A DNA stretch of 63,952 nucleotides, counting the filler, from Basidiobolus meristosporus CBS 931.73 (lineage: Eukaryota; Fungi; Basidiobolomycota): the NCBI GenBank assembly GCA_002104905.1. It is 3 parts of 3 records of this genome, joined end to end, with 100 filler letters (N's around TTAATTAATTAA, not from the genome) between each part and the next. Parts side by side here need not be neighbours in the genome. Positions count along the whole stretch, not along the records: positions 17,104 to 47,886 come from MCFE01000844.1; 2 more parts are not named here. One strand, 5' to 3'. The translations under genes were made by a program, and so were the position numbers. The notes below the pieces were generated by a model, which was given only the letters and a program-made list of their open reading frames with translations, searched no databases and was not told the DNA's origin. The number at the start of each line of letters is the position of its first letter. The stretch's first letter is position 1. Below are positions 5,142-45,527 of the stretch, one piece after another.

Positions 5142-5152
5142 CTTTGTTATGA

Positions 5153-17523: not shown

Positions 17524-20217
17524 TGTTACAGAATGCTCCTGAATATTGAGAAACCCTCCCTACTTAGTGTTACAGCTGTATTACTTCTACAAAGGTATAA
17601 ATACTGAGCTTCTTTATGAATAAATAACAGTTCAACTATTATCACTATTTCTTGATAAGTTCCTTATATCCAAATCACTTCTTAAATTGCAACAGGTTAT
17701 AAGCCCTGATTGCCTTAATCTATTCCAAAGATGACTTCTACCAGCAAACAAAGCAATACCAACATCTTCCCTTTTAAGGAGAGGTTTGATGGGAAGAATT
17801 ACAGACTTTGGAAAATCAAGATGCAGATCCACCTTGAGGAAAGAAAGCTTTGGAACATAGTAACAGGAAAGGAAGTTGAGCCCAAAGGAACAGCAGAAGA
17901 TGTGGAGAAGTTTCAAGTGAAGGAGAGAAAGGCCTTCAATGCCATATGCATCAATGTGCAAGACTCCTTCATTGGACAAATACATGCCTCAAATACTGCC
18001 AAAGCAGCATGGGAATCCTTAGAGAAGATCTTTAGAGCAAAGTCAGTATCAAGCAAGCTTTATTTGAAACAAAAGTTCTTCAGCATAAGGAAGAAACCAG
18101 ATGATGACATGCTACAACTCATTACCAGAATGGAGACACTTGCAGAAGAACTTTACAGTATTAATGCTGGTGTAGATGATGAAGAAAAGATACTCTGTCT
18201 GCTTTGCAGCCTACCAGACAAGTATGAGCCACTCATACTTTCTTTTGAAAGCAGAGAAGACAACTTGACTTTAGACTATGTCAAAGGAAGACTTCTCCAT
18301 GAAGAACTCAGACGTAATGATCAAGCAGATAAAACTGAAGATAATGCTTTATTCAGTTCAGAAAGGCACACAGAAAAGAAGGGAAAGCAACAAAACCAAA
18401 GAAAACCTGGCTGCTGTGACTACTGTAAAAAGCCAGGACACTGGGCAAGAGAATGCAAGAAGAAACAAGCAGACAAAAAACAGAAACTAGAGCAAGCAAA
18501 CCATATAACTACTGATGAACAGTTATTTGTAACTGTACAAGAGAGTGCAAGTAACTGAAGTAATGAATGGTATATTGACTCTGGAGCATCACAGCATATT
18601 TGTGGTATAAAGGATTGGTTCAGCAACTTAAAGACTATTCCCGTAAGAAAGGTTTATTGGGGAGATAACTCTGCATTGGAAGCTACTGCCAGTGGGTCTA
18701 TACAACCAAATATGAGTGATAACTCAGGGGCAACAACAGCAAAACTGACTGACATACTCTATGTACCTGGAATAGCTAAGAACCGACTCTCAGTCAGTAA
18801 AGCAACTACTCAGGGACTGAAATTTGTTTTTACTAAGCTGAGCTGCTCAATATTGAGTGAAAATGGACAAAAATTAGCTTCAGGAATCAGAGATCCAAAT
18901 ACATACAAGTTACAATGCAAGATCATTGTACCTGAGTATGTCAACATTGCTGAAACTGATGAAACCAACTGGGAAATGTGGCATAGGAGGCCAGGACACA
19001 TTGGGGAACAGAAAATGAGCCAATTGGTTGAAAATTAGCTTGTTTTGGGCCTGAAATACTCAATTCCAATCAAATTGAATGTTTGTAAGAGATGTTCATA
19101 TGGCAAATAAGCTAGGCAATGTTTCAAGAGCTCAGAAGGCATCAATACCACCAAAATATTGGCTATTGTACACTCAGACATATGTGGCCCCATGAGAACA
19201 CTGTCCTTTGGAGCCATGAGATAATTTATGACGTTTATTGATGACAAGACAAGATATACATGGGTGTACTTCCTCAAAACCAAGGATGAAGCTTTAGAGA
19301 CGTTTATGCACTTCAAGAACATAGCGGAAACACAAACAGGATGTAAATTGAAGGTACTACAAAGTGACAATGGAGGAGAATACTGCTCAAAGGAGTTTGC
19401 AAAATACTGCTTGTCTACTGGTATGCTTCAACAGACCACAGTTCCTCATACTACACAGCAAAATGGAGTAGCAGAATGTGCAAATAGAACAATAGTAGAG
19501 ATGGGAAGTTCTTTGCTACATGATAAGGGAATGGACTACAGGTTTTGGGCTGAATCTATTGCTACCACTGTATACATCAAGAACAGATGCCCAACAACAG
19601 CACTACATGATTCTACACCCTTTGAAGCATATACAGGCAAAAAACCAGATCTCCAGCACCTCAAGATCTTTGGCAGTGATATTTTTTATCACATCCCTGA
19701 CAAAAAACGCTCAAAGTTGGAACCAAAGAGTAGGAAAGAGATCTTTCTTGGGTATTGTGAAGATACTAAAGGGTATAGAGTGTATAATGGCAAAATTCAG
19801 AAGCTGATTAACAGCAGGGACGTTGTATTTGAGGAGAATTCAGATCAGAAAGCCACAGAAATTATTGGTCAGCTGCCTGATGATGCATTCAACACTAATG
19901 AAGAAGATACGTCCCAAATCCAGCCTGATATGGAAGATACTTCTACCAGTTCCAGATCAGAACAGATTATCCCAGTTAGGAGATCTACCAGAATAAGAAA
20001 TGCCCCTGGATCCTGGTGGCAGACATACAATGATCATGAAGAAGATTATCATACCTTATGTGCCAAACCTCGGAATCTGGAACAGGCAATGCAAAGTCCA
20101 AATGCTACTAAGTGGCAACAAGCCATGCAGGAGGAGTGCCAATCACTGATCAAGGCAAAAACGTGGGAACTGGTAGATTTACCAAATGGGAGAAAGCCAA
20201 TAGGATGTAGATGGGTC
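17524..20217 (+). mobile_element. Ty1/Copia element, 3'-truncated at the start of RT
   Basis: LTR 17524-17695 (TGTTACA...GCAACA), PBS GGTTATAAGCCC, gag (FDGKNYRLWK, CDYCKKPGHWAREC), protease WYIDSGAS, integrase (HSDICGP, SDNGGEY, QQNGVAE), RT begins KPIGCRWV then stops. Confidence 0.92.
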
Positions 20218-22365
20218 ACCAATCCCCACAAATTAGAACATTGTTATTGCCAACTTGACAACTTTAGTTCTCTCTTCAAACCTTCTGTAAAAACTTTCAA
20301 TTGTCTCTTAACTAATATTGCCGACCTTGAACAACTTCATCGCCAACTTTTATTAGAAGTTCTAACTTTACCCAAACTTTCTTGACTCTATACCTCTTAC
20401 AAAGCTATCCTTGATCTTTGCAATCTTCTTATTCCTGCCTTCTCCTCCCCTAATACTACTTCTTCCTCTCATGATCTTCCCAACCTACAAACTTTTTTGC
20501 TTGATGATCCTCCTAATATACGCTCCTCTTCATCTGATGAGCCTCCCAATATACGTTCCTCTTCATCCAATGAGCCTCCCAATAGACGCTCCTCTTTGTT
20601 TGATGATCCTCCCAATAGACGTTCCTTTTCATCCAATGAGCCTCCCAATAGACACTCCTCTTCATCTGATGATCTTCCTAACCCACAAACTTTACCTCCC
20701 AAATCTTCTTTACAACATATTCTCTTGTCTCAACACAAAATTTCCCTTCTTAACAAATTTGTTAACAACATCTCTTGTATCTTTGTTATCGATAATATCC
20801 CCACCACTGGCACCCTTGACCCCTCCATCTTTTGCAAAGGTATCTTCCCCAATCGCAACTCCCTCTCCAACCCTTGAACTTCTGAACTTGACAAATTAGA
20901 AGATATTGCCTTTGCTCTCTCTTCTCACGCCCTCTCTTATCTTTCTTCTACCTCACGCAAATCTGTTGACAAAAAACTTATCCCCATTAAAGTCAACTAT
21001 TCTCCCCGCTCTGGATACTATCTTTCTGTCACCAATTCTTTTGCCACCAAACTTAAATCTTTCTTAACCAAATCTTTCATCTCTAACAATAACATTACCT
21101 TTAAATCTGACAAATTAAACACCAAAATCTCCTCCAACAGCCTAACCCACATTAGCAATCATATTCTCTCCCTAGATGACCAAATTAACAAACAACTTAA
21201 ATCTCTCTTCCTTAGCAGCCTCAAACACTTATCTTCTTACAAAAATATCTTTTGTTGCATCAAACTCTTTGTCGCCAAATTTGACGTTATTAAATCTAAC
21301 TACAAAATTAGTCGCCTCTACAACTTCTGCCACCCTGTTGTCAAACTCTCCAACAAAAGTTATTTTAAAGCCACTGATCTCCGTCACCCCCTCATCAAAC
21401 GCCTCCACACTAATCTAGAATGTGTCCCTAATGATATCACCATTGGTACCAACAACCATGACAGTATCATCTTATACTCCATGAACTCCTGTGGCAAAAC
21501 CAGCCTCCTCAAAGCCTGCGGCCTCTCCATCATCCTTGCCCAAATGGGCTCCTTTGTCCCCGCTTCTTCTTTCAAATTCTCTTCCTACAAATCTCTCATG
21601 ACTTGCATCCTTAGCAAAGATAATATTCTCAAAGGCCAATCCTCCTTTGTCGCCAAAATGTCTGACCTTAGAAATATCCTCAAACATGCCAACCCCTACA
21701 CTTTAGTTCTTGCCAACAAAATTACCCACGGCACAGAACACATCACTGGATCTGCTATCTTTGCCTCCAGCATCATGACTCTCGCCAAACAAAATATCAG
21801 CTTTATGTTCACCACCCATTTACACAACATTTACAAATTTATTAAAGATATTCCCAACGTTAAAGTTTTTCATCTTTCTGTTAATTTCAAACATATTAAT
21901 TCTAAAAATGTTATCATCTTCAAATGCAAAATTAAAGAAGGCCCCTGTGACTCCATATATGGCCTCAAAGTCTGCAAATTCCTTAACATGGACTCTAACT
22001 TCCTGCAAAAAGCTTACCAAATCCGTGCCAACATTTTGTCCCGTGAAGATAAAGCTTGTCCCACTATTGCCAATGGTCTTCTAAACCAATACTCCAAATA
22101 TAGCCATTACAACAAACTTGTTTACAAATGTCAAATCTGCAACTACGTCCCTACCCAAACTACCAGCCTCCCTATCAATGTCCACCATATCCAACATCAA
22201 CACACTTCTGGCAACAATGGTATGATCAACCATCGCCACAAAAATTCTAAATCTAATCTTGTTGCTCTTTGCAAAAACTGTCACATTAAAACCCACCAAA
22301 ATAAACTCCAGATTAACGGCTATGCTAGCACCATCAAAGGTCTTATCTTAAACTTTGCACAATAA
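20218..22365 (+). pseudogene. 5'-truncated MutS7-type gene (MutS domains III-V plus C-terminal HNH), probable giant-virus origin
   Basis: One frame with a few stops: LTNIADLEQLHR, SIFCKGIFP, FKATDLRHPLIKR, VPNDI, MNSCGKTSLLKACGLSIILAQMGSFVPA, GQSSFVAKM, FMFTTHLH, SIYGLKVC, then CQIC...VHHI...KNSKSNLVALCKNCHIKTH. Strongly C/T-rich and intronless. Confidence 0.85.
20503..20690 (+). repeat. 33-bp coding minisatellite (5 units plus a partial) inside the MutS7 frame
   Basis: Units like GATGAGCCTCCCAATATACGTTCCTCTTCATCC encoding (D/N)(D/E)PPN(I/R)RSSSS. Confidence 0.9.
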
Positions 22366-22499
22366 CCATTCTAACCCAACGTTTATCCCTTTTTAAAACT
22401 CCTTTCAAACCTAACTCCCACCCCCTAATAAAACTTTTTTTATAAACCCTAATCTTTCTCTAACAACTTTTCCCAAAGTCTAACCGTCAAACTCCAATT

Positions 22500-22930
22500 A
22501 ACATCTTTTTCAAGATCCAAACCTTATTGTCATGAAAACTTTTTAAAAAACTTTTTTAAACATCAAGATTAAAACTTTGTCATCCTAAAAAACTTTTACA
22601 CAATTCAAACTTTGTCATCCTAAAAAACTTTCTCAACCAAACTTAATCTTTCTACTCCCAAACTCTCTTGACCCAAACCTTTTTCAAGATCTAAACTTTG
22701 TCATCCCGCAAAACTTTCTCAACCAAACTTTTTTCAAGGTTTTAGTTTAGTCTTCCCGCCAAACTTTTTTTAAGATCTAAACTTTGTCATCACGCAAAAC
22801 TCTTTTTAAAAAAATTTGTCATCACGCAACCTTTTTTTGACTAAACTTTTTCAAGATTTTAGTTTAGTCTTCCTGCCAAACTCTTTTCAAGATCTTAACT
22901 TTGTCATCACGCAAGACTTTTTTGACTAAA
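22500..22930. repeat. AT-rich array of about 7 copies of (CAAGATCT)AAACTTTGTCATC
   Basis: Motif at about 22572, 22607, 22693, 22779, 22811 and 22897, a degenerate copy near 22510, interleaved with TTAGTTTAGTCTTCC..CCAAAC units. Confidence 0.8.
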
Positions 22931-23639
22931 CTTTGACAAATAAAAAAGTTTTCTCCAGACTTTTAGTCCAGATTTTTTTTAATCTATGTTTTTATTCTAA
23001 TGTCTATTTGGTTTATTTTTTTTTAACCAGTTTTAAATCATAATGCCAATTAACATTATTAACATTATAAACAACCCGTTTATAGTTATTTTAGAACTGC
23101 TTGACCCAATTGGAAATACACAACGGTTTGGTTGGGAAGCAGACAACTTTGCTTTATTTTTTGCTGGCATATATATGGAAGTAAGTCAATCCAAAGGAGA
23201 AATGGTGTTACATATACGTGTGTATGTGGTGCCACAACTTTATTAAACATACTTACTATGGCAGGTCATCATTGAATCTTACATTCATGTAGCTGAAATG
23301 TCTCATATTCAAGACTGTTTTAAATTCACATGAGTATTGGCAAAATAGTGATATAATAATGTTACATTGTTGTATGTCAGACTGTTTGCCCCATGGACAA
23401 GGCCATTTCAATTTAATACCATAAGAGAAGAGAAAAAAGACCATGTGGCTATTGTAGCAAGCCTCTCAGCCATCAAGCACGCAGGCAGCATAAGAAGTAT
23501 TACAAGGATCATGGCCAGTGTTTTGACACACAAGTCATATCTGACCACTCACTAGTCACTACTGTACCAACAATATCTTGCCTGCCACTTGATACTTCTA
23601 TAACAGCCTTTAGGCTCACCCCAGCCTTCTGAATAAGGC

Positions 23640-24975
23640 ATGCACAGTGATAGCTCTGAAGAAGCAGGCTCACTGATGAATTATGAGCCTATCTTTCCTG
23701 AAAACCATACTCTGCATGAGCCTGGCAAAATCCCATTGTGTAAAGAGACAACACCTGTGGAAAAAAATGCCAAGGATACTTTATGGAGTCAAGTGAGCCC
23801 AGTAATCAATCTACTGGTGAATGATGTAATGTTATGGCTAGAGAAGTGGCACATTTCCACCAATATCAGTAATGGGGGCTATGAGGATATACTACTACTT
23901 TTTGCCAAAATCATCCTGGGATGCAACTTACCATGTGCATGTTATAAATGGATAACAATCATGTGGCTGGCAACATATGACCCAGAGACCATCCTGATAC
24001 CAGCATGTGCTTACAGTTGTGTGGTATTCACATCAGAGAATGCCACCATTGCAAAGTGTCCAACTTGTCAGGAATCCACTACCATTGGGGGAAAACATGG
24101 TTCACATTCTGGATATTTTCCAGTAATACCCTGGATAAAGAAGCTCATGCAGACCAACAAATATTGTGAAGCTATAAAGTTCCACACTTAGTATCAATCA
24201 AGCACAAACATATCAGATTTATTTGATGGTAAACATTACAAACAGCTAAGAAGCAAGGGCTACTTCTCAAGTATGTATCACCATGCCTTTGCCTTGACAC
24301 TTGATGGAGTCTCATTAAACAAGCACTCTACCAGCATATCCTGCTGGCCACTGATTCTCATCAATGTGAATCTGCCTTCTGCCTTACAGTATCAGAGCAG
24401 AAATCTGATGGTAGTCTCACTGGTACCTGGGACTATATCACCATCCAGCCTGAATACCTACCTGTATCCATTACTGGATCTATTTTGTATACTTTCCAGC
24501 AGGTTTACTCTAAATGGTCATGATGTAAAAGTGCAAAGCATTATTTGTATTGGAGGAACCCCAGCCATTAGCAAGATAGCCAGCTTTTCTGGGCATAATG
24601 GATGGTATTGCTGTTGAATGTGTGAATCCAGGGGACTTACTCCATTACTCACACACACTATTTTTACCCAAACACCAACACTACAAACATCATCTTTCCA
24701 CAGAGCAAACATACAGAAGTCAGCAGGCAATTGCCGCAAAGTAGGCAAGCTATAAGTCACAGGTTGGAATATGGAATTAATTAGAGACCAAAGATACTTA
24801 ATAAAGAGGGAATCTGCAGGAGCAAAAGCTTTCCAATGGGAGCAATGCATTTTCTTTTCAACAATATCCCTACACTGATGACCAAGTTGTACATGGTACT
24901 TTTCAAGCTAAATGAGCCCTTTGAGATTCTGGAGAAATTTGAAAGAATTGGCAAGATATAACAGAATAGTTTTTT
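23640..24975 (+). mobile_element. Degenerate CACTA/EnSpm (Tnp2) transposase, N-terminal to central part
   Basis: AKCPTCQE; ALTLDGVSL..SISCWPLILINVNLP..QSRNLMVVSLVPG...LNTYLYPLLD; FSGHNGWYCC; multiple stops. Confidence 0.75.
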
Positions 24976-25425
24976 TTTATCCAAACTTTATGTGGAATAC
25001 CCAATGTAGTAGTGGGTAAGCAAATAAAGAGGGGTGAATCCACAGTGGAATAAGTGAACCATCAGTGGCTTGCAAATGGCTGTCTAAACACCGTCATGTT
25101 TTTGCCATATAAGGCAATTGGATATACTAGTTAATTAGATCCACTCAAATAGTTGTAATGTCCACTAATACCACAAGAATGCCATGCCATCCTATGCAAA
25201 ACAAGTGCAAACTCCATTATATTTTTTCAACTGTATATGGCTGTAAATTAGCAAAATGCTGTTGTGATCTTGTCACCAGATTGTGTAGATAGTTACCAAT
25301 TCTAAGCTGCTGGTATTATAGTGGTCTCCTGATGGGATCTTAACAGCTGATCTGGATTAGATCCATCTGCAGGACCAACATATTTTTCATAGGGAAGGTC
25401 TATCTGGTGGTGGATCTTATGTCAT

Positions 25426-28400
25426 CTAAATTTTGTCCTCAATTAGCAATAGAGTATCCCACAAGACCCTATTCTGAGTCCTTATAGTGTATCTTAAGCA
25501 GATAGCAACAGTCTCTTTTAGGTATCTAAAAATCTGCTCAACTGCTGCAATGTATTTAGATCCATAGTTCTGATTATGCTGGCTGACAACTCCTGCTGGA
25601 TATGAGATAACCAGATGAGTTCTGTGCATGATAGATATCAGACTGCAGATCACAGTTTGATAAGGAAAGTTATGGCTTTCAGATGGCACCAAGCTCTCTG
25701 GATTTGGTTGAGTTTTGACAAAGATAAGGTTTGTCTCCATTGAGGTGGCTGATGGTTTTTGGTCCTCCATTTGGTACTTCCTTTGTATATCTTGAACATA
25801 CTTGGGTTGGCCTAGAGTGATATTCTGGGTACTTCTGTCTATGGAGAACTTTAATCCTAAGTAGTAACTGAGTTCTCCCAGATTGGACATCTTGAACTCC
25901 TTAGATAGGCTGGATTTAGTCTCTTTCAATGGTTCTAGGTTATTGGTGGCTATAATAAGCTCATCCACATATAGAGCCAATAGGCCTGGATTTGCCCTAT
26001 TTGATTTAGAGTATATGCAATAGTCAGCAATACTCCTTAGGAAACTCAAAGATTTTAAATAAGTATCTATCTTACAATTCCAGGCTCTTGTTGATTGTTT
26101 GAGTTGATGTAGAGAGTTTTTAAGCTTGCCAACCCAAATTGGGGTCATCTTGATCAGCAAACTCATTGGGCTGGTCCATATACATGTCCTTAAGTAGTGA
26201 CTGAGCTCTCCTAGATTGGACATCTTGAACTCCTTAGATAGGCTGGACTTAGTTTCTTCTAATGTTTCTGGGTTATTGGCGGCTATAATAAGATCATCCA
26301 CATAAAGAGCTAATAGAACTGGATTTGCTCTATCTGGCTTATAGTATATACTATAGTCAGCATTACTTCTTTTGAAACTCAAAGATTCCAAATAGGCATC
26401 TATCCTGCAATTCCAGGCTCTTGGTGATTGTTTGAGACCATACTGTGGCTTTTTAAGCTTGCAGACCAAATGGGGGTTGTCTTGGTCAAAAAACCCATCA
26501 GGCTGGTTCATATACATGTTTGCATCAAATTCTCCATTCAAAAATGCAGTTTTTGCATCCATTTGATGAATAAAGAACGTATATTTAGCAGCAATAGCCA
26601 GTATTAATCTTATGGCATTGAACTTGGCTACTGGTGCAAAGGTCTCAGTATAGTCAAGTCTTTTTGTTTGAGAGTATCCTTTGGCTACAAGTCTTGCTTT
26701 GTATCTTTCAATTGTACTATCAGCCCTGTATTCTGTCTTGAAGACCTATCTGCATCCAATTGATTTATGGTTGATTGGTAATTTGACAAAGTCCCAAGTT
26801 TGATTTTCCATCAGGGCCTGATATTCCTCAGTCATTGCAGATCTTCAAAACTTCATCTGCAGGCTATTTAGGGCCTCTTTCACAGTCTGGGGCTCATCAA
26901 TGTGGACTGAATAGGCATAGGCTAAGTTTGTACCCTCATTAATATAGTAATTTGGGCTACCTCTTGTCCAATTGGATCTCCAGGCATATGATACTGGAAT
27001 GATCACTTCTGAGATATTGCTGGGCACTGATTCTGGCTGAACCACAGTTGTAGAGTGCTCTGGAGTGAAAAAATTTATATTGTTTTGCTCTGGTTCAAGG
27101 CTTATAATTGGTGGACTTGAGATCAGATTTTTGTCATCATCTGATGTCATATTTTGTGAAAATTTTGAATTTTTATCAAGCAGCACATCCCTGCACATGA
27201 TTAGCTTCTTTTCTGCAGTATTGTGGAGTCAGTATGCTTTAATCTCAATGCAATAACCCAAAAATATGCATTTTACACTTTTTAGCTCAAATTTTGACTG
27301 ATTTCTGGGCAGTTTCTTGGCATATACTCTACACCCAAATATTCTTAGATGATCTGCACTTGATCTGTACCCATGCCATGCTTCAAATGGAGTAGAATCA
27401 CAAAGTATTCTTTTACAATTCCTATATTTAATGTGTACAGCAGTGGCTTCTGATTCTGCCTAAAATTCATAGGATAATTTTGTTGTAAGAGTCTTGGACA
27501 TATTGTAAGTGATTAGGAGAACAAGTATATCATGAGGTTTTCACTTAAAGATTTATTGAATGTAAAAGTAGTGTTTATACTTTTACCTGGTCTTGGCATA
27601 ACAAACACATAGAATAGGGTAAGGAAGGTCCCAAGAACATATGTGCAGAGTTTGGGGCTGTTTAGACAACTTTGAGAATTTTCATGTTCTGGGTACCAGG
27701 TATTTTGGTGAAAATATTCTAAGTAAATCCTGACAAGGAATTTGGTCAGTATTTACTATAATCTGCAGGGAATGATCTAAGTGACTAAGTTAGGTGAATA
27801 TATAGGTGGAAATACAAATCTTACAACAAATTCTTGATCATGGATCATAGATCTTGCCATATCAATTATTAACCTGTTAGCACATTCTGCTACTCTATTT
27901 TACTGTGGGGAGTATGGTACAGTAGTCTCTTGCTTTATCCCATGAATTTTGCAGAAGTGGATGAAGAGTTTTGAGGTATATTCTCCGCCATTGTCAGAAC
28001 GTAGTTTCTTGATTTTTTCATCAGTTTCTCTCTTGACCATAGCTTTAAGCACTCTGAGCTTAGACAGAGCTTCTTCCTTTCTCTCCATGAAGTAGACCCA
28101 TGTGTATCTTGTATAATCATCAATAAAAGTGATCAAGTACTTCATCCCGTCTAAGGATAAATTTTGCATAGGTCCACACTGATCTGAGTGAATTAGATCT
28201 AATTTTTTCTTAGTTTTGACTAACCCAGAGCTCTTGAACAATTGTCTGGCTTGCTTTCCATATATGCAGGCTTCACAGTGCTCCAAATTAGCTGGGGGAT
28301 CAATTTTTACTCTGGAAATTAGCTGATCTTTGATCATTTTGCGCAAGTAATCATGCTCCAGAGTCAATATACCATGTTTGAGAATCATTGTCTGTAGTCA

Positions 28401-29586
28401 TACTTAGTGCAGATATGAATAGTCTATCTTCAGTTGTTGCAGCATTTCCATATTCAGGCTTTTTCTGCTGACAATATTTCTTTTTGAAGCATCAGTTGGA
28501 TGTGTGTCCTCTCTTTTTGCAATAGTTACAAAACAGGTTGTTGTTGCCATTGTAGGGTCTTGGGTGCCTCCTTTGTTGGCTATCATTGCTTATTAAAGCA
28601 CTTTCTTCTTCCTTCTTATTGGTGCTTGATTTTCTTAATTCTTCATCCAGGAGCCTTCCATATACATAATTTAAGGTCAATTCTTCAGTTCTGGACTCTA
28701 GGGCTGATACAAGGCCCTGAAGCTTGTCTATCAAGCTATTCAGGATGGTAACTATCACATCCTCATCAGTAGTTGGTGTGCCCACAGATTCCATTTCATC
28801 TACCAGCAGGGTAATTCTGTCAAGTAGATTTCTCATTTCTTCTCCTGGCAGCATCTTTGTAGTAAAGAATTCTTGTCTCAGATACATGCTCTTAGCAGCT
28901 GAACATGACTGGTAGTTTTTTTTCTAATGTCTTACAGGCATTCTTTGCTGTTTTTGCTCTTGATCATCAAATTAGCAATTTGTCCTTATCATTAAGGCAA
29001 AGGCAGTTAAAGGCACTTTGTTCTTTCTTCTGTAACTTTAAGGCTTCCTCTCCCACATTTTTAGGAGGACATTCCTCTCCCATGACAATATCCCAAAGGC
29101 CTCTTTCTTGTAGCAGCATCTTCATCTTCACCTTCCACACTTGGTAGTTAGATCCATCAAACTTTTCAACAGAGGGAAAAATTCTAGTAATAGCAGTGGT
29201 AGACATTGCAAAGTGTGACAGCTTGGGGCTCATAACCTGTTGTAAGAGTCTTTAGAGTTATTGGAAGTGATTGGGAGAACAAGTAGATTATGTGGTTTTC
29301 ACCTAAGGATTTGATGAATGTAAAAGTGGTATTTATACTTGTACATAGTCTTGGCATATCAAACATGAAGAACAGGTTAAGGAAGATCCCAAGAATATGT
29401 GTGCAAAGTTTGGGGCTGTTTGGACAACTTTGAGAATTTTCATGTTTGGATACCTGGTATGTTGGTGAAAGTATTTCAAGTAAATCCTGACAAAGAATTT
29501 GGTCAGTATTCACTTGGATTTGAAGGTAATGATCTAAGTGACTAAGTTAGGTGAATATTTAGGTGGGATTATGAGTTTTCACCACA
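25426..29586 (-). mobile_element. Ty1/Copia element, degenerate, 3'-truncated, with an internal deletion and a nested solo LTR
   Basis: 5' LTR 29238-29586, PBS GGTTATGAGCCCC, gag, integrase, RT (MDAKTAFLNG, LYVDD); no RNase H end or 3' LTR. Confidence 0.88.
27481..27828 (-). repeat. Solo Copia LTR inserted into the integrase of its own family
   Basis: 348 bp, TGTTGTAAGA...CTTACAACA; flanks AATTT/AATTC; removing the LTR and one flank restores the integrase sequence seen at about 33115-33140. Confidence 0.9.
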
Positions 29587-31311
29587 ATTGGGCTATTTCT
29601 GGTCCTTTTGGATCTCCAGGCTTGTGCTACTGGAACAATCACTTCTGGGATATCCCTGAGCACTGATTCAGGCTAAACCACAGCTGTAGAGTCCTCTGGA
29701 TTGAAATAATTTTCATTGTTTTGCTCTGATTCAATCCTGACAATTGGTGGACTTGAGATCAAAATTTTGTCATCATCTGATGTCATTTTTTGTGAAAATC
29801 TTGAATTACATCAAACAACACATCCCTGGACTTGATCAGGTTCTTTGCTTTGGCATTGTAGGGTATATATGCCTTACTCTCATTGCAGTAGCCCAAAAAT
29901 ATGCATTCAATACTTTCTAGCTCAAATATTGACTGATTTCCAGGCGGTTTCTTGGCATATGCTGTACACCCATATATTGTTAGATGTTCTGCACTAAATC
30001 TGTATCCACGCCATGCTTTAAATGGAGTAGAATCACAAAGTATGCTGTTATAACTCTTATTTCTAAGGTATACAGCTGTGGCAACTGAATCTGCCCAAAA
30101 ATCATAGGATAATTTTTGATGATGGAGCATATATCTTGCCATATCAGTAATTGATCTATGTTAACATTGTGCTACTCCATTTTTCTGTGGGGAGTATGGT
30201 AAAGTGGTCTCTTGCTTTATTGCATGAGTTTTGCTCCCTGGGCCTAGACAGAGCTTCTTTATTTCCTTCCATAATGTAGACCCTATATATCTTTTATAAT
30301 CATCAACAAAAGTGATTAAATACTTCATCCCACCTAAGGATAAATTTTGTATAGGTTTGCACAGATCTGGGTGAGTTAGATTCCATTTTTTCTTGGTTTG
30401 ATTAGCCCAGAGCTCTTGAACAGTTGTCTGTCTGATTTCCCATTTATGAAGGCTTCACAGTGCTTCAAATTAGCAGGGGATCAATGATTACTCTGGAAAC
30501 TTGCTGATCTTTTATCATTTGCTCAAATTATCAAAGCTTAGAGTTAAATCTTCAGTTCTGGACTCTAGGGCTTATACAAGGCCCTGAAGCTCATCTGTCA
30601 GGCCATTCAGGGTAGTTACTAACAAATCCTCATCAGTCATTGGTACACTCACAGATTCCATCTCATCTCCCAGCGGGGTAATTCTGTTAAGTAGATTTTT
30701 CATTTCTTCTCCTGGCAGCATCTTGGCAGTAAAGAGTTTTTGTCTAAACTACATTCTCTTGGCTGCTGTGCATGATTGATAGGTGTCTTCTAATACCTTC
30801 CAAGTATTTGTTGCTGTTTTTGCTCTTGAACACTGAATTGTTTCTAACATTAGGGCAAATGCAGTTGAAGGCACTTTGCTCTTTCTTCTAGTACTTTAAG
30901 GCTTCCTCTTCAATGCTTTTAGGAGGGCATTCTTGTTCCATGTCAATATCTCAAATGCCTCTTTGTTGTAGCAGCATTTTCATCTTCACCTTCCACACTT
31001 GGTAGTTAGATCCATCCAACTTATCAGCAGAGGGGAAAATTCCAGTAATAGTGGTGGTAGCCATTGCAGAGAGTGACAGCTTGGGGCACAAAGCCTGTTG
31101 TAAGAGTCTTTGGAGATATTGGAAGTAATTGGGAGAACAAGCTGATAATGTGGTGTTCACTTAATGATATATTGAATGTAAAAGTAGTATTTATACTTTT
31201 ACATTATCTTTGGTGGAACAAGCATGTAGAATAAACTTGGGAAGGTCCCAAGAGAATGTGTGCAAAGTTTGGGGCTGTTTGGGCAACCTTGAGAACATTT
31301 GAGTTCTGGGT
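29587..31311 (-). mobile_element. Second minus-strand Copia remnant (partial 5' LTR, gag, integrase)
   Basis: Partial LTR 31096 to about 31311, degenerate PBS, gag start ADKLDGSNYQVWK, integrase ADSVATAVYLRNKS; interrupted at 29586 by the previous element. Confidence 0.8.
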
Positions 31312-31313
31312 GC

Positions 31314-34300
31314 TGAAAAGTTGGATGGATCTAACTACCAAGTGTGGAAAGTGAAAATGAAGATGCTGCTACAAGAAAGAGGCCTTTGGGATATTGTCAT
31401 GGGAGAAGAATGCCCTCCTAAAAGCGTGGGAGAGGAAGCCTTAAAGTAACATAAGAAAGAACAAAGTGCCTTTAACTGCCTTTGCCTTAATGATAAATAC
31501 AAATTGCTAATTCAGTGCTCAAGTGCAAAAACAGCAACAAATGCTTGAAAGGTATGACAAATTGCCAATTCAATGCTCAAGAGCGAAAATGGCAAAGAAT
31601 GCCTGGAAGGCATTAGAAAAAAACTACCAGTCATGTTCAGCTGCTAAGAGCATGTATCTGAGACAAGAATTCTTTACTACAAAGATGCTGCCTGGAGAAG
31701 AAATGAAAAATCTAATTAACAGAATTACCCTGCTGGTAGATGAGATGGAATCTGTGAGCATACCAACTACTGATGAGGATGTGATAGTTACCATCCTGAA
31801 TAGCCTGACAGACAAGCTTCAGGGCCTTGTATCAGCCCTAGAGTCCAGAACTGAAGAATTGACCTTAAATTATGTATATGGAAGGCTCCTGGATGAAGGA
31901 TTAAGAGAATCAAGCACCAATAAGAAGGAAGAAGAAAATGCTTTAATAAGCAATGATAGCCAACAAAGGAGGTACCCAAGACCCTACAAAGGCAACAGCA
32001 ACCAGTTTTGCAACTACAGCAAAAGGAAAGGACACACATCGGACCAGAGTTGCAAAAAGAGAGATTATCAGCAAAAGAAGCCTGAATATGGAAATGCTGC
32101 AACAACTGAAGATAGACTATCCATATCTGCACTAAATATGACCACAAAGAAGGATTCTCAGACGTGGTATATTGACTCTGGAGCTTCTCAACACTTTACA
32201 CACCAAAAAGAACTTTTTACCAAATATAAAGAAATTCCAATTGAGGAGGTTTTCATGGGTGACAATAGAGCACTTGATGCAGTGGGAAAAAGAACTATCC
32301 AAGTAAGCCTTAGAAGCAGTGAAGGAAGCCATACACTGACCTTCAAAGAAGTACTCTATGTACTAGAAATAGCCAAGAACCTACTATATGTAAGCAAGGC
32401 CACAGCAGAAGGACTCAGTTTCAGTTTGGACAATTCTGGATGCAGGATCACTGATCAAAATGGTGCCCATATTGCTTTGGGCATCAGAGACCAGAATCTA
32501 TACAAGTTGGCTCATAATCCATCATATTTAGAAGCCAATATAAGTAACTTAAATGAATATACACTAATGCTTTGGCATAGGAGATTTGGACGTCTCAATC
32601 TTGATTATTTGCATAAAATGATCAAAGATCAGCTAATTTCTGGAGTGAAAATTGATCCCCCAGCTAATTTGGAGCACTGTGAGGCCTGCATATATGGGAA
32701 ACAAGCCAGACAACCGTTCAAGAGCTCTGAGTTAGTCAAAACTAAGAAAAAATTAGATCTAATTCACTCAGATCTGTGTGGACCTATGCAAAATTTATCC
32801 TTAGACAGGATGAAGTACTTGATCACTTTTATTGATGATTATACAAGATACACATGGGTCTACTTCATGGAGAGAAAGGAAGAAGCTCTGTCTAAGCTCA
32901 GGGAGTTTAAAGCTATGGTAGAGAGAGAAACTGATGAAAAAATCAAGAAACTACATTCTGACAATGGCGGAGAACATACCTCAAAACTCTTCATCCACTA
33001 CTGCAAAATTCATGGGATAAAGCAAGATATTACTGCACCATACACCCCACAGCAAAATGGAGTAGCAGAATGTGCTAACAGTCTAATAATTGAAATGGCA
33101 AGATCTATGATCCATGATCAAAAATTATCCTATGATTTTTGGGTGGAATCAGTTGCCACTGCTGTATACATTAAAAATAGGAGTTATAACAGAGTACTTT
33201 GTGATTCTACTCCATTTGAGGCATGGTATGGATACAGACCAAGTGCAGAACATCTAAGAATATTTGGGTGAACAGCATATGCCAAGAAACTGCCCAGAAA
33301 TCAGTCAAAATTTGAGCCAAAAAGTGTAAAATGCATATTTTTGGGCTACTGCAATGAGAGTAAGGCATACAGACTCTACAATACCAAAGCAAAGAAGCTG
33401 ATCAAGTCCAGGGATGTATTGTTTGATGAAAATTCAAAATTTTCACAAAAATGACATCAGATGATGACAAAATTTTGTTCTCTAGTCCACCAATTGTCAG
33501 GATTGTATCAGAGCAAAACAATGAAAATTATTTCAATCCAGAGGACTTTACAACCGTGGTTCAGCCAGAATCAGTGCCCAGGAATATCCCAGAAGTGATC
33601 ATTCCAGTATCAAATGCCTGGAGATCCAATTGGACAGGAAATAGCCCAAATTACTATATCAATGAGGGTACAAACTTAGCCTATGCCTATTCAGTCCATA
33701 TTGATGAGCCCCAGCCTGTAAAAGAGGCCCTAAATGGCCCTCAGACAAAGTTTTGGAGATCGGCAATGACTGAGGAATATCCGGCCCTGATGGAAAAGCA
33801 AACTTGGGACTTAGTCAAATTACCAATCAACCAAAAATCAATTGGATGCAGATGGGTCTTCAAGACAAAATACAAGGCTGATGGTACAATTGAAAGATAC
33901 AAAGCAAGACTTGTAGCCAAAGGATACTCTCAAACAAAAGGACTTGACTATACTGAGACCTTTGCACTGGTAGCCAAGTTTAATTCCATCAGATTAATAT
34001 TTGCTATTGCAGCCAAGTATAAGTTTTTAATTCATCAAATGGATGTAAAACTGCATTTTTGAATGGAGAACTTGATGAGAATGTGTATATGGACCAGCCT
34101 GATGGGTTTGCTGACCAAGATAGCTCCCATTTGGTCTGCAAGCTTAAAAAGTCACTATATGGTCTCAACCAATCACCAAGAGCCTGGAACTGCAAGATAG
34201 ATTCTTATTTGGAATCTTTGAGTTTCAAAAGGAGTAATGCTGACTATAGTATACACTATAAGCCAGACAGAGCAAATCCAGTTCTATTAGATCTATATGT

Positions 34301-35634
34301 GGATGATCTTATTATAGCTGCCAATGACCTAAAAACATTGGAAGAGACTAAATCCTGCCTATCTAAGGAGTTCAAGATGTCCGATCTAGGAGAACTTAGT
34401 TACTATGTAGGGATTAAGTTCTCCATAGACAGAAGTACCCAGACTATCACCCTAAGTCAGTCCAAGTATATTCAAGATATACTAAAGAAGTACAAAATGG
34501 AAGACTGTAAACCAGCAGCTACCCCAATGGAGACAAACCTTAACTTGGTCAAAGCTCAACCAAATCAAGGGAGCTTGGTGCCATCTGAAAGCCCTGACTT
34601 TCCTTATCAATCTATGTTTGGCAGTCTGATGTATATCATGCTTGGAACACGTCCAGATATCTCATATTCAGTGGGAGTTGTCAGCCAACATAATCAGAAC
34701 TATGGATCTGATCATATTGCAGCAGTTATTGGATTTTTAGATACCTAAAAGGAACTGCTGATATCTGCTCAAGATACACTTATAAGGATTCAGAACAGGA
34801 TCTTGTGGGATACTCTGATGCTGATTGGGGACAAAATTTAGAAGTCAGAAGATCCACCACAAAATACCCCTTTCTTTACTGTCTAGGAGCAATTTCATGG
34901 AATTCAAGAAAGCAACCAACTGTAGCACTTTCTACCACAGAGGCAGAGTACATGGCAGCCTGTGAAGCTACAAAAGAAGCAATGTGGCTAAGAAAGCTGT
35001 TTACAGATTTAGGCCAATGTCAAAAAACGCCTATTACTTTATTTCAAGATAATCAAGGATGTATACAATTAGGTAGAAATCCAATTTTTCATGCTAGAAC
35101 CAAGCACATAGATATTAGACATCATTTCATACATGAAGCTATAGAGAATAACTTAGTTAGCTTAGTTTACTGTCCTACTGATGAAATGATTGCAGACATA
35201 TTTACCAAACCATTAGCTAGAGACAAGTTTGAATATCTTAGGTCAAAATTAGGACTAGTCAGTATGAACATTTAGCTGAGTGGGAGTGTTGTAAAATTTG
35301 TATTTCCACCTAAATATTCACCTAACTTAGTCACTTAGATCATTACCTTCAGATCCTAGAGAATACTGACCAAATTTGTTGTTGGGATTTACTTAGAATA
35401 TTTTCACCAAAATACCAGGTACCCAGAACATGAAAATTAGATAAGTTGTCCAAACAGCCCCAAACCTTGCACATATGTTCTTTGGACCTTTCTTAGTCTA
35501 TTTTACATGTTTGTCATGCCAAGATCATGTAAAAGTATAAATACTACTTTTATATTCAATAAATCATCAAGTGAAAACCACATAATCTACTTGTTCTCCC
35601 AATCACTTCCAATAACTCTACGACTCTTACAACA
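31314..35634 (+). mobile_element. Ty1/Copia element lacking its 5' LTR; gag-pol with frameshifts and stops
   Basis: gag, WYIDSGAS, HSDLCGP, SDNGGE, RT (YKARLVAKGYSQ, LYVDD), RNase H (GYSDADW, EAEYMA, TKHIDIRHHF); PPT AGCTGAGTGGGAG; 3' LTR 35287-35634. Confidence 0.93.
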
Positions 35635-35639
35635 ATAAC

Positions 35640-41485: not shown

Positions 41486-41878
41486 TGTACTAAGGTCGAA
41501 TAGGCGAACCCAGAAGCCTCGAAAACCCCATTTCAATATGGAATATAACCCGATGGTTTTTTTTATCCGGTTTGACGAAAGGCTGTTTAATCTGATTGCC
41601 TGCTCACATCTGTGATTAGTTTCACGACGAAGTAGGCAAGATCCATTTTTCTTTTGAACCAAATCCGGATTTTTCTTCACCGATACCATGCAAATCTGCT
41701 AGGATGCAAATTGAGGCTATATTGCACACTATGCAGTCCGAGGATTCTTCTATCGTCCGTAAACGCTCCATTATCAGCGAGATCGGTTGTGTTTGTTGGT
41801 AAATGAGGAATGGAATTATTTATTCAATCAAAAAGTATATGTATATGAAAGTTGTTGGGGCGAATTATTACACTGCGC

Positions 41879-43180
41879 TTATGAGGCTTCTTCCATCTTG
41901 GTATCGGTATCATTGCATGTCTCCTTGACATTTTTCGCAATGAGATAGGTGAAGGGAAGGGACACGGTGAACAGTGCCCACGACACGATCAGCTGGATCA
42001 AGAAGCTGGTGTTGACTGCGTCGATTCTCCAGGCAATGGCTGCTCCGGCAGATTGCATTCCCTTGTAGTAGCCGGCATATCTGGCCAAGATGGTCGAGTC
42101 GTTGGACATGGCTCCCATGATCCAGTAGGCGTAGGTCTGGAGGGCAGCATCGCAGATACCATAGCAGACATACAGCACCCACTTGGGCCAGAAGGCTCCG
42201 GCATCATTGATGAAGTCGATATCCTTGGGGTGATCCTCGCGGGTGTATTGAAGCTGCAGAGCAAGACCTCCACCCCAGGTGGCGGTGAACAGGATCCCGA
42301 CGCCAGCAAGTCCGTACAAAGCTCTGGTTCTTCTGCCGAAGCGGGGGGTATCAAGGAACGCACCCAAGATGTATGCTCCGGCCATCTGCGAGCCCCAGTA
42401 GAAGGCGTTGTTGAATGATCTGCTACGGAGGTTGAACAGCACTCCGTTCACTGCTCCGAATTGGTACGAGTAGAACCAGTTGGACGCGAGGCAGAGTGGG
42501 GTCAGCAGGAGCATGTTCTTGTCGGTGAACATCTTCAAGATTCCGATGATCTCATTGCCAATGTTGCTGAACTTCTCCACATGCACGCGAGACCCATCGT
42601 CACGGACGACCTTGGCGGGTGGGAGGATGGCAAGTCCAGCAATAGCGCCAATGATCATGATCACCAGGAAGGCCAGGTAGGTAGAGTTGCTGACAGCCCC
42701 GCTGTCTGAGTGGAAGTTGAGGCCGAATGGAATGAACGCGCCCATGACACCGCCAAGGTTGAAGATGATCCAGAAGAGACCGACACAGCGACCCTTCTGA
42801 TCTTCAGCGGGGTAGGCCATCATGATCACACCCTGAGTGGTCCAGAGAATACCAGCACCAATACCCAACACTGCGCTGGAAGCAATGACAAAGGCGGCGT
42901 TCTTGTTGACGTTGTAGTTGAGAAGAGAGCCGGAGTATAGGGCATAGGAGAGCCCACCGAGCAGCATACACAAGCGGCCACCAAGGACATTGTAGAAGCC
43001 ACCACCGAGACAACCGAATACAGCGAAGCAGGCGTAAAGGGCGACGTTTCCGTTCTTGGCGGTGTTATCGTCCATCTGGCCACCGGCACCCATGCCGTTG
43101 ATGACATTGAACATGCCAGGGCAGCAGAAGCAAACAAGACCTACCAGGAGGACTTGTGTGAGAGGACTGTTGTATCTCAT
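41879..43180 (-). CDS. UNC-93-like MFS transporter, copy 1
   Basis: 433 aa, multi-TM, YNSPLTQV...FCCPGMFN...GAGG, LWTTQGVIMMAYP, RYAGYYKGMQSAGAAIAW; intronless. Confidence 0.88.
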   Translation of the reverse strand: MRYNSPLTQVLLVGLVCFCCPGMFNVINGMGAGGQMDDNTAKNGNVALYACFAVFGCLGGGFYNVLGGRLCMLLGGLSYALYSGSLLNYNVNKNAAFVIASSAVLGIGAGILWTTQGVIMMAYPAEDQKGRCVGLFWIIFNLGGVMGAFIPFGLNFHSDSGAVSNSTYLAFLVIMIIGAIAGLAILPPAKVVRDDGSRVHVEKFSNIGNEIIGILKMFTDKNMLLLTPLCLASNWFYSYQFGAVNGVLFNLRSRSFNNAFYWGSQMAGAYILGAFLDTPRFGRRTRALYGLAGVGILFTATWGGGLALQLQYTREDHPKDIDFINDAGAFWPKWVLYVCYGICDAALQTYAYWIMGAMSNDSTILARYAGYYKGMQSAGAAIAWRIDAVNTSFLIQLIVSWALFTVSLPFTYLIAKNVKETCNDTDTKMEEAS

Positions 43181-44225
43181 GATAATGAATTTGATGTGAA
43201 CTGATGTGATAGTAGCAACATTTCACAGCTTTTATAACCTCGTAAAATTGGCGCATATTCGTCTCCAACGATAACGTGCTTCATATGGCAGGCATTCGTG
43301 GAGCCGAGAACCAGATCATACTCCCATATAATATATATGGAATGATCCTTAGTACAAAGTCTGGGCTGTCAAGCAAACTGTTTGGTAGTAACTCAGTAGA
43401 ATTCAAATGGGGGTAAATGTAACAAACCTGGGTAGGTAAATACCCCCAAGAAACTACCCTGTATATATCTATACATAGTCTACTTATCGGAGCAAACCTC
43501 AAGGTTCTATTCAATAAGCTAATTAATTAATCTTAATATGGGATTTCTTGGAGCTGAAGAAGTTCGACTTTCTGATGATTGTGGCTTCCTCGCATAGTTA
43601 CTGTTATGCTGGCCAATCAGGGAGTCCCAATTAGTGTTTTCCATATTCTACCATGGATGATGAGATGCCTATTTTGGAATGCCATCTGTGGAGAACCTAT
43701 CTCCATCGCTCAACTGACTTGTACCAACCTGGTCGGAGAAGACGAATTAGGAATCACCGCTGCCACGACAGTTGAGCAACCCAACCAAGGATCCCCGTTG
43801 CAGTACGGTACACGAGTATGGCCACACCTGCCATAAAAAGGAATTCCAATCATTATGGTCTAGTTACGTAGTTTCAAAATGACAATATCTCCAGGACAAA
43901 ACTAGACTTATTGCCACACAAACACAAACTTGAAGTCAAGAATGGGCTTAAATTCCATTGCAAGTCGAGATCGAATGATTCCTTTCGCCGGTCACGTTTT
44001 ATCGTTCGCGATGCTGTGAATGGCAAAATGATTCTACTTATTTCGATTCCCTGTGATCGTTGGACAATTTTGGTGGAGTATCCGTACTGCTTAAACTACC
44101 ATTTTAGCATGAACACAACACAAAGCAAACCACATAGCACAGAGCATGAAACTATAAAAGCAGGGCTTGATTTCCTCCTTTCTCAGTAAAACCAATCATA
44201 CATTTTATTTGAATAAAATATTCAA

Positions 44226-45527
44226 ATGCGCTACAACAGTCCTCTCACACAAGTCCTCCTGGTAGGTCTTGTTTGCTTCTGCTGCCCTGGCATGTTCAAT
44301 GTCATCAACGGCATGGGTGCCGGTGGCCAGATGGACGATAACACCGCCAAGAACGGAAACGTCGCCCTTTACGCCTGCTTCGCTGTATTCGGTTGTCTCG
44401 GTGGTGGCTTCTACAATGTCCTTGGTGGCCGCTTGTGCATGCTGCTCGGTGGGCTCTCCTATGCCCTCTACTCTGGCTCTCTTCTCAACTACAACGTCAA
44501 CAAGAACGCCGCCTTTGTCATTGCTTCCAGCGCAGTGTTGGGTATTGGTGCTGGTATTCTCTGGACCACTCAGGGTGTGATCATGATGGCCTACCCCGCT
44601 GAAGATCAGAAGGGTCGCTGTGTCGGTCTCTTCTGGATCATCTTCAACCTTGGCGGTGTCATGGGCGCGTTCATTCCATTCGGCCTCAACTTCCACTCAG
44701 ACAGCGGGGCTGTCAGCAACTCCACCTACCTGGCCTTCCTGGTGATCATGATCATTGGCGCTATTGCTGGACTTGCCATCCTCCCACCCGCCAAGGTCGT
44801 CCGTGACGATGGGTCTCGCGTGCATGTGGAGAAGTTCAGCAACATTGGCAATGAGATCATCGGAATCTTGAAGATGTTCACCGACAAGAACATGCTCCTG
44901 CTGACCCCACTCTGCCTCGCGTCCAACTGGTTCTACTCGTACCAATTCGGAGCAGTGAACGGAGTGCTGTTCAACCTCCGTAGCAGATCATTCAACAACG
45001 CCTTCTACTGGGGCTCGCAGATGGCCGGAGCATACATCTTGGGTGCGTTCCTTGATACCCCCCGCTTCGGCAGAAGAACCAGAGCTTTGTACGGACTTGC
45101 TGGCGTCGGGATCCTGTTCACCGCCACCTGGGGTGGAGGTCTTGCTCTGCAGCTTCAATACACCCGCGAGGATCACCCCAAGGATATCGACTTCATCAAT
45201 GATGCCGGAGCCTTCTGGCCCAAGTGGGTGCTGTATGTCTGCTATGGTATCTGCGATGCTGCCCTCCAGACCTACGCCTACTGGATCATGGGAGCCATGT
45301 CCAACGACTCGACCATCTTGGCCAGATATGCCGGCTACTACAAGGGAATGCAATCTGCCGGAGCAGCCATTGCCTGGAGAATCGACGCAGTCAACACCAG
45401 CTTCTTGATCCAGCTGATCGTGTCGTGGGCACTGTTCACCGTGTCCCTTCCCTTCACCTATCTCATTGCGAAAAATGTCAAGGAGACATGCAATGATACC
45501 GATACCAAGATGGAAGAGGCTTCTTAA
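44226..45527 (+). CDS. UNC-93-like MFS transporter, copy 2 (identical protein, inverted)
   Basis: The two 433-aa translations in the ORF track are identical; divergently oriented with a 1045-bp spacer. Confidence 0.88.
   Translation: MRYNSPLTQVLLVGLVCFCCPGMFNVINGMGAGGQMDDNTAKNGNVALYACFAVFGCLGGGFYNVLGGRLCMLLGGLSYALYSGSLLNYNVNKNAAFVIASSAVLGIGAGILWTTQGVIMMAYPAEDQKGRCVGLFWIIFNLGGVMGAFIPFGLNFHSDSGAVSNSTYLAFLVIMIIGAIAGLAILPPAKVVRDDGSRVHVEKFSNIGNEIIGILKMFTDKNMLLLTPLCLASNWFYSYQFGAVNGVLFNLRSRSFNNAFYWGSQMAGAYILGAFLDTPRFGRRTRALYGLAGVGILFTATWGGGLALQLQYTREDHPKDIDFINDAGAFWPKWVLYVCYGICDAALQTYAYWIMGAMSNDSTILARYAGYYKGMQSAGAAIAWRIDAVNTSFLIQLIVSWALFTVSLPFTYLIAKNVKETCNDTDTKMEEAS

Follow-up and report, generated by a model that had tools for sequence, protein, structure and literature searches.

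A decayed fragment of a giant-virus-type MutS7 gene in transposon-rich DNA of the fungus Basidiobolus meristosporus and its fuller paralogue in the same assembly

The window analysed here is a stretch of 63,952 nucleotides from the genome of Basidiobolus meristosporus CBS 931.73 (assembly GCA_002104905.1), a fungus which we take to belong to the Zoopagomycota; its positions 17,104–47,886 represent the whole of contig MCFE01000844.1. An initial annotation had placed an intronless gene of the giant-virus type MutS7, i.e. a MutS protein with a C-terminal HNH nuclease domain, at positions 20218–22365 inside a transposon block, and had interpreted it as a fossil of an integrated nucleocytoplasmic large DNA virus (NCLDV). 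The MutS-HNH architecture, the fungal host and the transposon surroundings are borne out by the present analysis, but the locus is a 5′-truncated, mutated secondary copy of a gene that is more completely preserved on another contig of this assembly, MCFE01000822.1. The features of the locus are compiled in Table 1.

Translated through the stops, frame 1 from 20221 to 22365 is 715 codons long and is interrupted in frame by two TGA codons; it ends with TAA and contains zero frameshifts. It can be called intronless insofar as its alignment with relatives encoded by a single open reading frame (ORF) is colinear, in keeping with the frame of ca. 715 codons originally proposed, and its longest conventional ORF (21481–22365, 294 amino acids) is the one which the ORF track had displayed; an exact-protein look-up with this ORF gave no recorded match. 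The base composition of 20218–22365 (A 29.8, C 29.7, T 31.3 and G 9.2%; GC skew ca. −0.5) agrees with the described C/T richness. Within the stop-free C-terminal 495 codons Pfam recognizes the MutS_V domain (PF00488; E 8.5e-36, 124 bits, cut-off 30.2) and, just above threshold, MutS_IV (PF05190; E 1.3e-4, 22.6 bits, cut-off 22). A model calculated with AlphaFold from an alignment of 64 sequences is confident, with a mean predicted local distance difference test score (pLDDT) of 87 and values >90 over domain V. The previously noted ATPase domain is thereby confirmed, whereas only the distal part of the lever domain (III) is present, as deduced by homology: Pfam is silent on domain III in the window copy, whose start corresponds to a point within the region that Pfam assigns to MutS_III in the full-length paralogue (residues 341–492 of ORF 8625–10562 on MCFE01000822.1). 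As the copy begins within domain III, the mismatch-binding domain I and domain II are absent from it according to both Pfam and homology; MutS_I is detected in the paralogue (9.5e-11) and in the relatives. With regard to domain I, the gene family qualifies as MutS7, whereas the window fragment does not. Between domains III and IV the frame carries a tandem array of ca. 5–7 units of 33 nt, each encoding 11 Pro/Ser-rich residues; the corresponding array of the paralogue (ca. 10040–10360 on MCFE01000822.1) is longer by 99 nt, distributed over gap runs of 66 and 33 nt.

The HNH domain is recorded only weakly within the 495-residue query (E 0.014, 15.9 bits, under the Pfam cut-off), but scanning the last 95 residues alone raises the match to 22.9 bits, above the cut-off of 21.4 (PF01844; E 9.8e-5), and Pfam also finds it in seven of seven aligned relatives. 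The residues of the CxxC..HH..N..CxxCH..H pattern, corresponding to four cysteines and the H-H-N-H motif, are invariant or nearly so in the alignment of 64 relatives (invariant columns C418, C421, H436, H437, N460, C465 and H469) and are retained in the window copy. The same C-terminal part is matched by the HNH region of IscB in NCBIfam (6.5e-5); a profile of it compared with the PDB sequences produced only a weak match to a SAVED-domain protein (E 0.82).

A search with the best full-length relative led to the counterpart gene, K493DRAFT_362925, which is annotated on MCFE01000822.1 as a hypothetical protein and specifies a MutS-HNH protein of 921 amino acids with 91% amino-acid identity to the window piece over 495 residues. 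At the nucleotide level the block 20215–23123 aligns to MCFE01000822.1 9792–12821 with 2787 identical and 121 mismatched columns (ca. 96% of 2908 aligned bases), while 123 gap columns lie almost exclusively in tandem repeats. Among 66 family columns with at least 90% conservation, 64 are kept in the MCFE01000822.1 model and 55 in the window copy. All statements on MCFE01000822.1 refer to 22 kb of this contig (1–22048), which contain the C-terminal ORF of an SNF2/NPHI-like helicase (a remnant), an 865-residue ORF for a B-family DNA polymerase (PolB), a HIRAN gene and the MutS7 gene, followed by five paralogous minus-strand ORFs of 326–348 residues devoid of known domains. Here the MutS7 gene reads as two overlapping ORFs in different frames, equivalent to one frame change, which is bridged by introns in the NCBI model; this change may be real or a sequencing error. 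The contig is not depleted in CpG (observed/expected ratio 1.16) and looks like gene-dense, little-decayed viral DNA.

The affinity of the fragment was explored by a HMMER scan of 1.84 billion representative proteins with the 495-residue window piece, which returned 1878 matches below 1e-30, the best of them a protein of 942 amino acids (48% identity, E 6.5e-123). The alignments of nearly all of the top 150 matches extend to the final query residues, so that these proteins bear the HNH tail. The best relatives are MutS-HNH proteins of 930–1050 residues on metagenome contigs (48–56% identity), where they are accompanied by genes for Rpb5, DNA ligase, a large helicase, a D5-type primase (D5_N), dUTPase and PolB. 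In the closest of these contigs the order large helicase – small ORF – Rpb5 – DNA ligase – (0–3 ORFs) – MutS7 is conserved, and one close contig has its MutS gene split into two adjacent ORFs. A grouping with fungal MSH paralogues or MutS2, named initially as the outcome that would speak against a viral type, is disfavoured by the scores: compared with 427 bits for the viral-context relatives, solved structures of MSH6, MSH2 and MSH3 reach 84–98 bits (MSH6 98; range including bacterial MutS 73–98) and MutS2 ca. 51 bits. The NCBIfam models of MutS1 and MutS2 score far under their cut-offs, and the named bacterial matches are MutS1 proteins with 25–28% identity and E ca. 1e-31. Fold matches in BFVD comprise Aureococcus anophagefferens virus (AaV), Pithovirus LCPAC404, LCPAC101, the ‘MutS subfamily 7’ protein of Tetraselmis virus 1 (TetV-1) and Moumouvirus (E 1e-31 to 1e-38), TetV-1 ‘MutS subfamily 7’ being matched with E 1.7e-33 versus 2.5e-11 for TetV-1 MutS8. 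In a neighbour-joining tree the window sequence and K493DRAFT_362925 form a pair (100/100) nested in the clade of metagenomic MutS-HNH proteins (98/100), and every HNH-type sequence is split from bacterial MutS1 (100/100).

The PolB encoded next to the paralogue points in the same direction. Among named sequences it is closest to PolBs encoded in the genomes of Mortierella, Linnemannia, Podila, Bifiguratus and Clydaea, genera that overlap with the host set of the endogenous NCLDV-like elements described for early-diverging fungi (Gong et al. 2020, PMC7017919), and the contigs closest to it encode SNF2 helicase, capping enzyme, Rpb1 and Rpb2. Judging by equal lengths of the contigs that carry them, MutS and PolB matches share metagenome contigs, which would make both genes members of one lineage. 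The closest relatives of the fragment are encoded in a giant-virus genomic context, the paralogue adjoins a viral-type PolB, and the MCFE01000822.1 region can be assigned by sequence to that NCLDV-like lineage whose endogenous elements are known from early-diverging fungi. The earlier proposal of an NCLDV origin stands in this form, supported by the viral context and the TetV-1 MutS7 fold match; a relationship to Mimiviridae in particular is not demonstrable, the source being rather the fungus-associated NCLDV-like group (PMC7017919). Of the NCLDV hallmark genes named at the outset (major capsid protein (MCP), PolB, A32 and VLTF3), none is seen on MCFE01000844.1, and PolB is the only one in the 22 kb of MCFE01000822.1.

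The two copies form a pair from which the decay of the window copy can be read. Their 121 differences include 104 transitions, which are distributed unequally: 87 are changes of the window copy (44 C>T and 43 G>A) versus 17 in the opposite direction (8 and 9). As many as 73 of the window-copy changes are located at a CpG of the MCFE01000822.1 copy, and conversion per site amounts to 52% for TCG (25/48) and 77% for CGA (34/44) compared with 0–20% in the other CpG contexts, and 1.8% of C and 0.6% of G outside CpG; a single CpG was changed on both strands. Both in-frame stops occur in the window copy only and fall into the class of CpG transitions, the MCFE01000822.1 copy having sense codons at both places; they are mutations of this copy and not signs of another genetic code. 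Conserved residues lost only in the window copy include positions of the ATPase motifs. The C>T/G>A changes gave rise to both stops and cost the window copy conserved residues of its ATPase, so that it is regarded as dead.

The surrounding transposable elements bear the same imprint. Their CpG observed/expected ratio is 0.04–0.11 versus 0.70 in a host gene, and the TCG index, calculated as for Microbotryum, is 1.05 and 1.86 for the transposable elements, 3.16 for the block, −0.2 for the genic part and ca. 0.1 for the MCFE01000822.1 copy. The host elements (17104–20217 and 23100–36500) combine a virtual lack of CpG with an excess of TpG/CpA and an extra TCG deficit, and the genic part (36501–47886) is undepleted. 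A comparison between copia copies was uninformative on the mutation spectrum of host elements, as their CpGs are already lost and only 5% of the differences fall at CpG. The block has apparently been treated like host repeats and MCFE01000822.1 has not. These data point to a strong CpG-directed, TCG-preferring mutation of B. meristosporus repeats that would resemble the RIP-like (repeat-induced point mutation) activity of Microbotryum (PMC10502011), with which it shares the target TCG (CGA when read from the complementary strand) and the resulting TTG/CAA. A TCG preference on either strand, as expected from such a process, is found; changes in both copies, as expected from a duplication trigger, are not (87 versus 17). 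Because only one of the two copies has been changed, methylation-linked deamination in repeat chromatin may fit better than a duplication-triggered process, and taken together with the depletion of all CpG contexts in the B. meristosporus transposable elements, which also differs from Microbotryum, it fits at least as well. Moreover, Microbotryum is a basidiomycete and the present host a zoopagomycete.

A second compositional trait, the excess of C over G, has a different distribution. It begins at ca. 20218 and ends at ca. 23100, coincident with the block; the third codon positions of the MutS frame consist of 41–44% C, 32–35% T, ca. 20% A and 2–4% G. The skew is common to both MutS copies and, on MCFE01000822.1, extends to the HIRAN gene and the adjoining non-coding DNA (ca. 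7000–12800), and it is absent from the PolB gene on the same strand of MCFE01000822.1 and from the metagenomic relatives. On MCFE01000822.1 it marks a compositional island (ca. 5000–13400) with a GC skew of −0.4 to −0.6 and C-rich third positions nearly without G. The skew makes stops rare in every frame and hence generates long overlapping ORFs. Several causes were considered and discarded. Symmetric CpG transitions do not produce skew. APOBEC-like G>A hypermutation should render four-fold sites A-rich, which are instead C/T-rich; the remaining G shows no depletion in GpA/GpG, and the undecayed paralogue is skewed as well. Adaptation to host codon usage is not supported, given 21% G at third positions in a host gene versus 2% in the fragment.

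Table 1. Features of the MutS7-type locus and its surroundings on contig MCFE01000844.1 (positions refer to the window)
Feature	Position	Strand	Basis and remarks
Virus-derived block: 3′ part of MutS7-type gene plus ca. 0.76 kb of 3′ flank	20215..23123	+	blastn and MAFFT versus MCFE01000822.1
MutS7-type (MutS-HNH) pseudogene fragment	20218..22365	+	5′-truncated, 2 stops, 9/66 family-conserved residues lost that the paralogue keeps
In-frame 33-nt tandem repeat inside the MutS frame	20461..20691	+	TRF period 33, 5.2 copies
MutS domain IV (clamp) match	20881..21120	+	Pfam PF05190
MutS domain V (ABC-type ATPase) match, ATPase-motif residues altered	21469..22032	+	Pfam PF00488, PDB MSH6 alignment, comparison with paralogue and relatives
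C-terminal HNH nuclease domain, all Cys4 and H-H-N-H motif residues present	22129..22299	+	Pfam PF01844
Non-coding 3′ flank carried with the gene fragment	22366..23123	.	6% G; tandem repeats with periods of 18, 32, 50 and 117 nt
copia-type long terminal repeat (LTR) retrotransposon, internal part: gag, beta-barrel/pre-integrase, integrase, SH3-like, start of reverse transcriptase (RT)	17731..20217	+	Pfam Retrotran_gag_2 1.3e-40, rve, SH3_retrovirus 9.7e-29, RVT_2 start
Tnp2-family (CACTA/KDZ-like) transposase remnant	23640..24617	+	Pfam Transposase_21 2.1e-9 for 24273–24617; 23640–24191 without Pfam match, assigned by eye
Nested and inverted copia copies, second copia family, nearly CpG-free	25395..35635	.	
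UNC-93-like MFS transporter genes (host), inverted duplicate, intronless	41869..45537	41879–43180 (−), 44226–45527 (+)	99% identity between the copies

On MCFE01000844.1 the block lies between broken host elements. At the left junction the copia element (CpG observed/expected 0.11) is interrupted within its RT region, protein homology to another copia copy stopping at 20217 and homology to MCFE01000822.1 starting at 20215. At the right junction homology to MCFE01000822.1 stops at 23123, and the Tnp2-family remnant and the copia field follow. Further downstream, the UNC-93-like transporter genes anchor the contig in the fungal genome; their inverted copies are separated by a spacer of 1045 nt, and a third copy (47207–47886; 86–88% identical) leaves the contig end. 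The block appears physically continuous with host DNA, having transposable elements on both sides and host genes on the same contig, and it exhibits host-type decay, as befits an endogenous element. No other virus-like ORFs were found on this contig outside 20200–23130. A repeat motif of the 3′ flank (window 22535–22938) recurs in the same orientation in intergenic regions of MCFE01000822.1 (7535–7642, 13282–13433, 14781–14836 and 17172–17257), adjoining genes of either strand; the viral element may thus possess a repeat dispersed over its intergenic regions.

A rival explanation is a retro-copy, in which the copia RT would have switched templates and taken up a MutS7 transcript; this would explain the shared orientation and the 5′ truncation, and the fragment does hold the 3′ part of the gene with the flank following it. 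The sense strands of MutS and copia coincide to the extent that the integrase/RT frame extends into the MutS fragment for ca. 55 codons before a stop is reached, which results in a chimeric ORF of 385 residues (19225–20382). This continuity is most likely due to chance, as a frame match is expected in one of three cases and few stops are possible in G-poor DNA. Neither a poly(A) nor a copia LTR or other copia sequence was found after the block at 23123, the 0.76-kb flank bears intergenic repeats present elsewhere on MCFE01000822.1, and the G-poor composition is shared by the genomic paralogue and is no mark of cDNA editing. We consequently rate a retro-copy as improbable. A mis-joined assembly or a contaminant, in which case the true sequence would exist only in the context of MCFE01000822.1 or in a virus or other organism in the culture, is compatible with the abrupt junctions (20217/20215), the fragmented assembly and the aspect of MCFE01000822.1 as dense, undecayed viral DNA with a CpG ratio of 1.16. 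However, mis-joined reads of the same locus would be identical, whereas the copies differ by 121 substitutions with a CpG/TCG spectrum on both strands matching that of the surrounding CpG-free host elements; this copy-specific spectrum constitutes the best argument against a chimera. With host repeats on both flanks and host genes on the same contig, an artefact of this kind is even less probable than a retro-copy.

The remaining alternatives concern the origin and the status of the gene. The Basidiobolus genome contains many bacterial genes. As MutS7 also occurs in Epsilonproteobacteria (PMC3166940), a transfer from bacteria instead of a virus was considered; it is very unlikely because the neighbours of the relatives are genes of eukaryotic viruses (Rpb5, capping enzyme, RNA polymerase subunits, PolB and D5), the paralogue adjoins a viral-type PolB, and the named bacterial matches are distant MutS1 proteins. 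A mitochondrial-type gene read in genetic code 4, i.e. a nuclear insert analogous to octocoral mtMutS, would account for both stops being TGA and for a composition (9% G, 30% C) like that of a skewed organelle strand in animal mitochondrial DNA, but is practically dismissed by the sense codons at both places in MCFE01000822.1, the CpG-transition class of the differences, the PolB and SNF2 genes beside the paralogue and the viral contexts of the relatives. Equally negligible is a domesticated, functional host repair gene: the MCFE01000822.1 copy is annotated as a gene and keeps 64/66 conserved residues, but even this copy is spread over two overlapping ORFs of different frames, and the window copy has no domain I, two stops, losses in the ATPase motifs and no upstream start except that of the copia frame.

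We therefore favour, with a probability of about 0.87, the interpretation of block 20215–23123 as a non-functional, 5′-truncated fragment of a giant-virus-type MutS7 gene with its 3′ flank, residing in transposon-rich nuclear DNA. It is a paralogue of the fuller MutS7 gene on MCFE01000822.1, which has a viral-type PolB and the remnant of an SNF2 helicase as neighbours, as the alignment of the two copies attests. In a tentative scenario, a piece of viral DNA might have been joined by non-homologous end joining or a later rearrangement between the broken copia element and the DNA-transposon remnant. Its CpG cytosines, foremost those in TCG, would then have been turned to T on both strands by deamination of 5-methylcytosine or a RIP-like process. 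These changes made both stops and led to the loss of ATPase residues, leaving a copy that now does nothing. The protein of the source virus would, by analogy with its family, recognize mismatches and itself nick DNA.

Several points weigh against this interpretation or limit its reach. It leaves the C-over-G skew of both copies unexplained. The tree is based on 368 columns, excludes the HNH part and comprises no named MSH1–6, MutS2, MutS8 or MutS7 references, so that the separation from MSH1–6, MutS2 and MutS8 would have to be derived from score gaps and fold hits. Neither a target-site duplication nor another hallmark of a defined integration mechanism was found at the block ends, and both junctions are known from the assembly sequence. 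A lone fragment on MCFE01000844.1 says little about the extent of viral DNA once present there. Likewise, a particle-forming virus is a presumed source, since a look for hallmark genes in the 22 kb of MCFE01000822.1 showed only PolB and the SNF2/NPHI-like remnant and no capsid gene; an MCP has been reported to be missing from non-zoosporic fungi except Dimargaris (PMC13533422).

A farther-reaching idea takes MCFE01000822.1 as very recent or still-replicating DNA of an NCLDV-like element in a non-zoosporic, animal-gut-associated fungus, and the window fragment as a piece of it that entered repeat-rich chromatin and was silenced there by a C→T process aimed at TCG and serving as genome defence against viral DNA. 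The contig is indeed gene-dense and not CpG-depleted, its PolB looks intact and its MutS7 gene has at most one frame change. Within the same idea, the 8-kb HIRAN–MutS7 island, the third codon positions of which are matched by no relative, could record a strand-specific mutational or replication regime of the element. We consider this idea unlikely.

Compared with known systems, the fragment resembles the MutS7 proteins of Nucleocytoviricota (TetV-1, AaV, Moumouvirus and the metagenomic ‘Pithovirus LCPAC’ bins) in having MutS domains followed by a C-terminal HNH domain, in matching them in fold and sequence across the whole 495-residue piece and in keeping the HNH motif residues. It differs in an identity of only 24–37% to the named representatives, in being broken and without domain I, and in its 33-nt repeat array and C-over-G skew, both unseen in the relatives. 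The study that defined MutS7 as the MutS-HNH lineage also described the octocoral mitochondrial mtMutS (PMC3166940), likewise a MutS7-type gene outside viruses after horizontal transfer and with the same domain III – V – HNH order. However, mtMutS is intact, expressed and mitochondrial, whereas the window copy is nuclear, truncated and dead; furthermore, MutS7 is described there as having no domain IV, of which Pfam finds a weak match in the window copy. A further counterpart is formed by the endogenous NCLDV-like ‘fundsalphavirus’ elements of early-diverging fungi, which count B. meristosporus among their hosts (Gong et al. 2020, PMC7017919). The host species is thus the same, the nearest named relatives of the MCFE01000822.1 PolB are found in genera listed in that study, contigs related to the present genes carry SNF2 helicase, PolB, Rpb1, Rpb2 and Rpb5, and retrotransposons adjoin viral DNA in both cases. 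The genes shared among those elements are D5, SNF2 helicase, a methyltransferase and RNA polymerase subunits; MutS is unmentioned there, supplements aside, and no mention of MutS7 in fungal NCLDV-like elements was found in the literature searched. In contrast to those elements, the viral material of the window consists of a single 2.9-kb gene fragment apart from any PolB.

The published picture for B. meristosporus, that of past contact with giant-virus-like elements, remains unchanged, and the present data add a gene to it, not a phenomenon. With MutS7, the NCLDV-like gene set of early-diverging fungi gains a self-contained gene of mismatch repair that is characteristic of large giant viruses, and the locus offers a clear case of viral DNA physically flanked by host transposons. 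Moreover, the two copies in one genome provide a natural before/after pair, in which foreign or repeated DNA has been degraded through CpG transitions that strongly favour TCG. The parts that could lead further are solely the C-over-G skew and the undecayed DNA of MCFE01000822.1.

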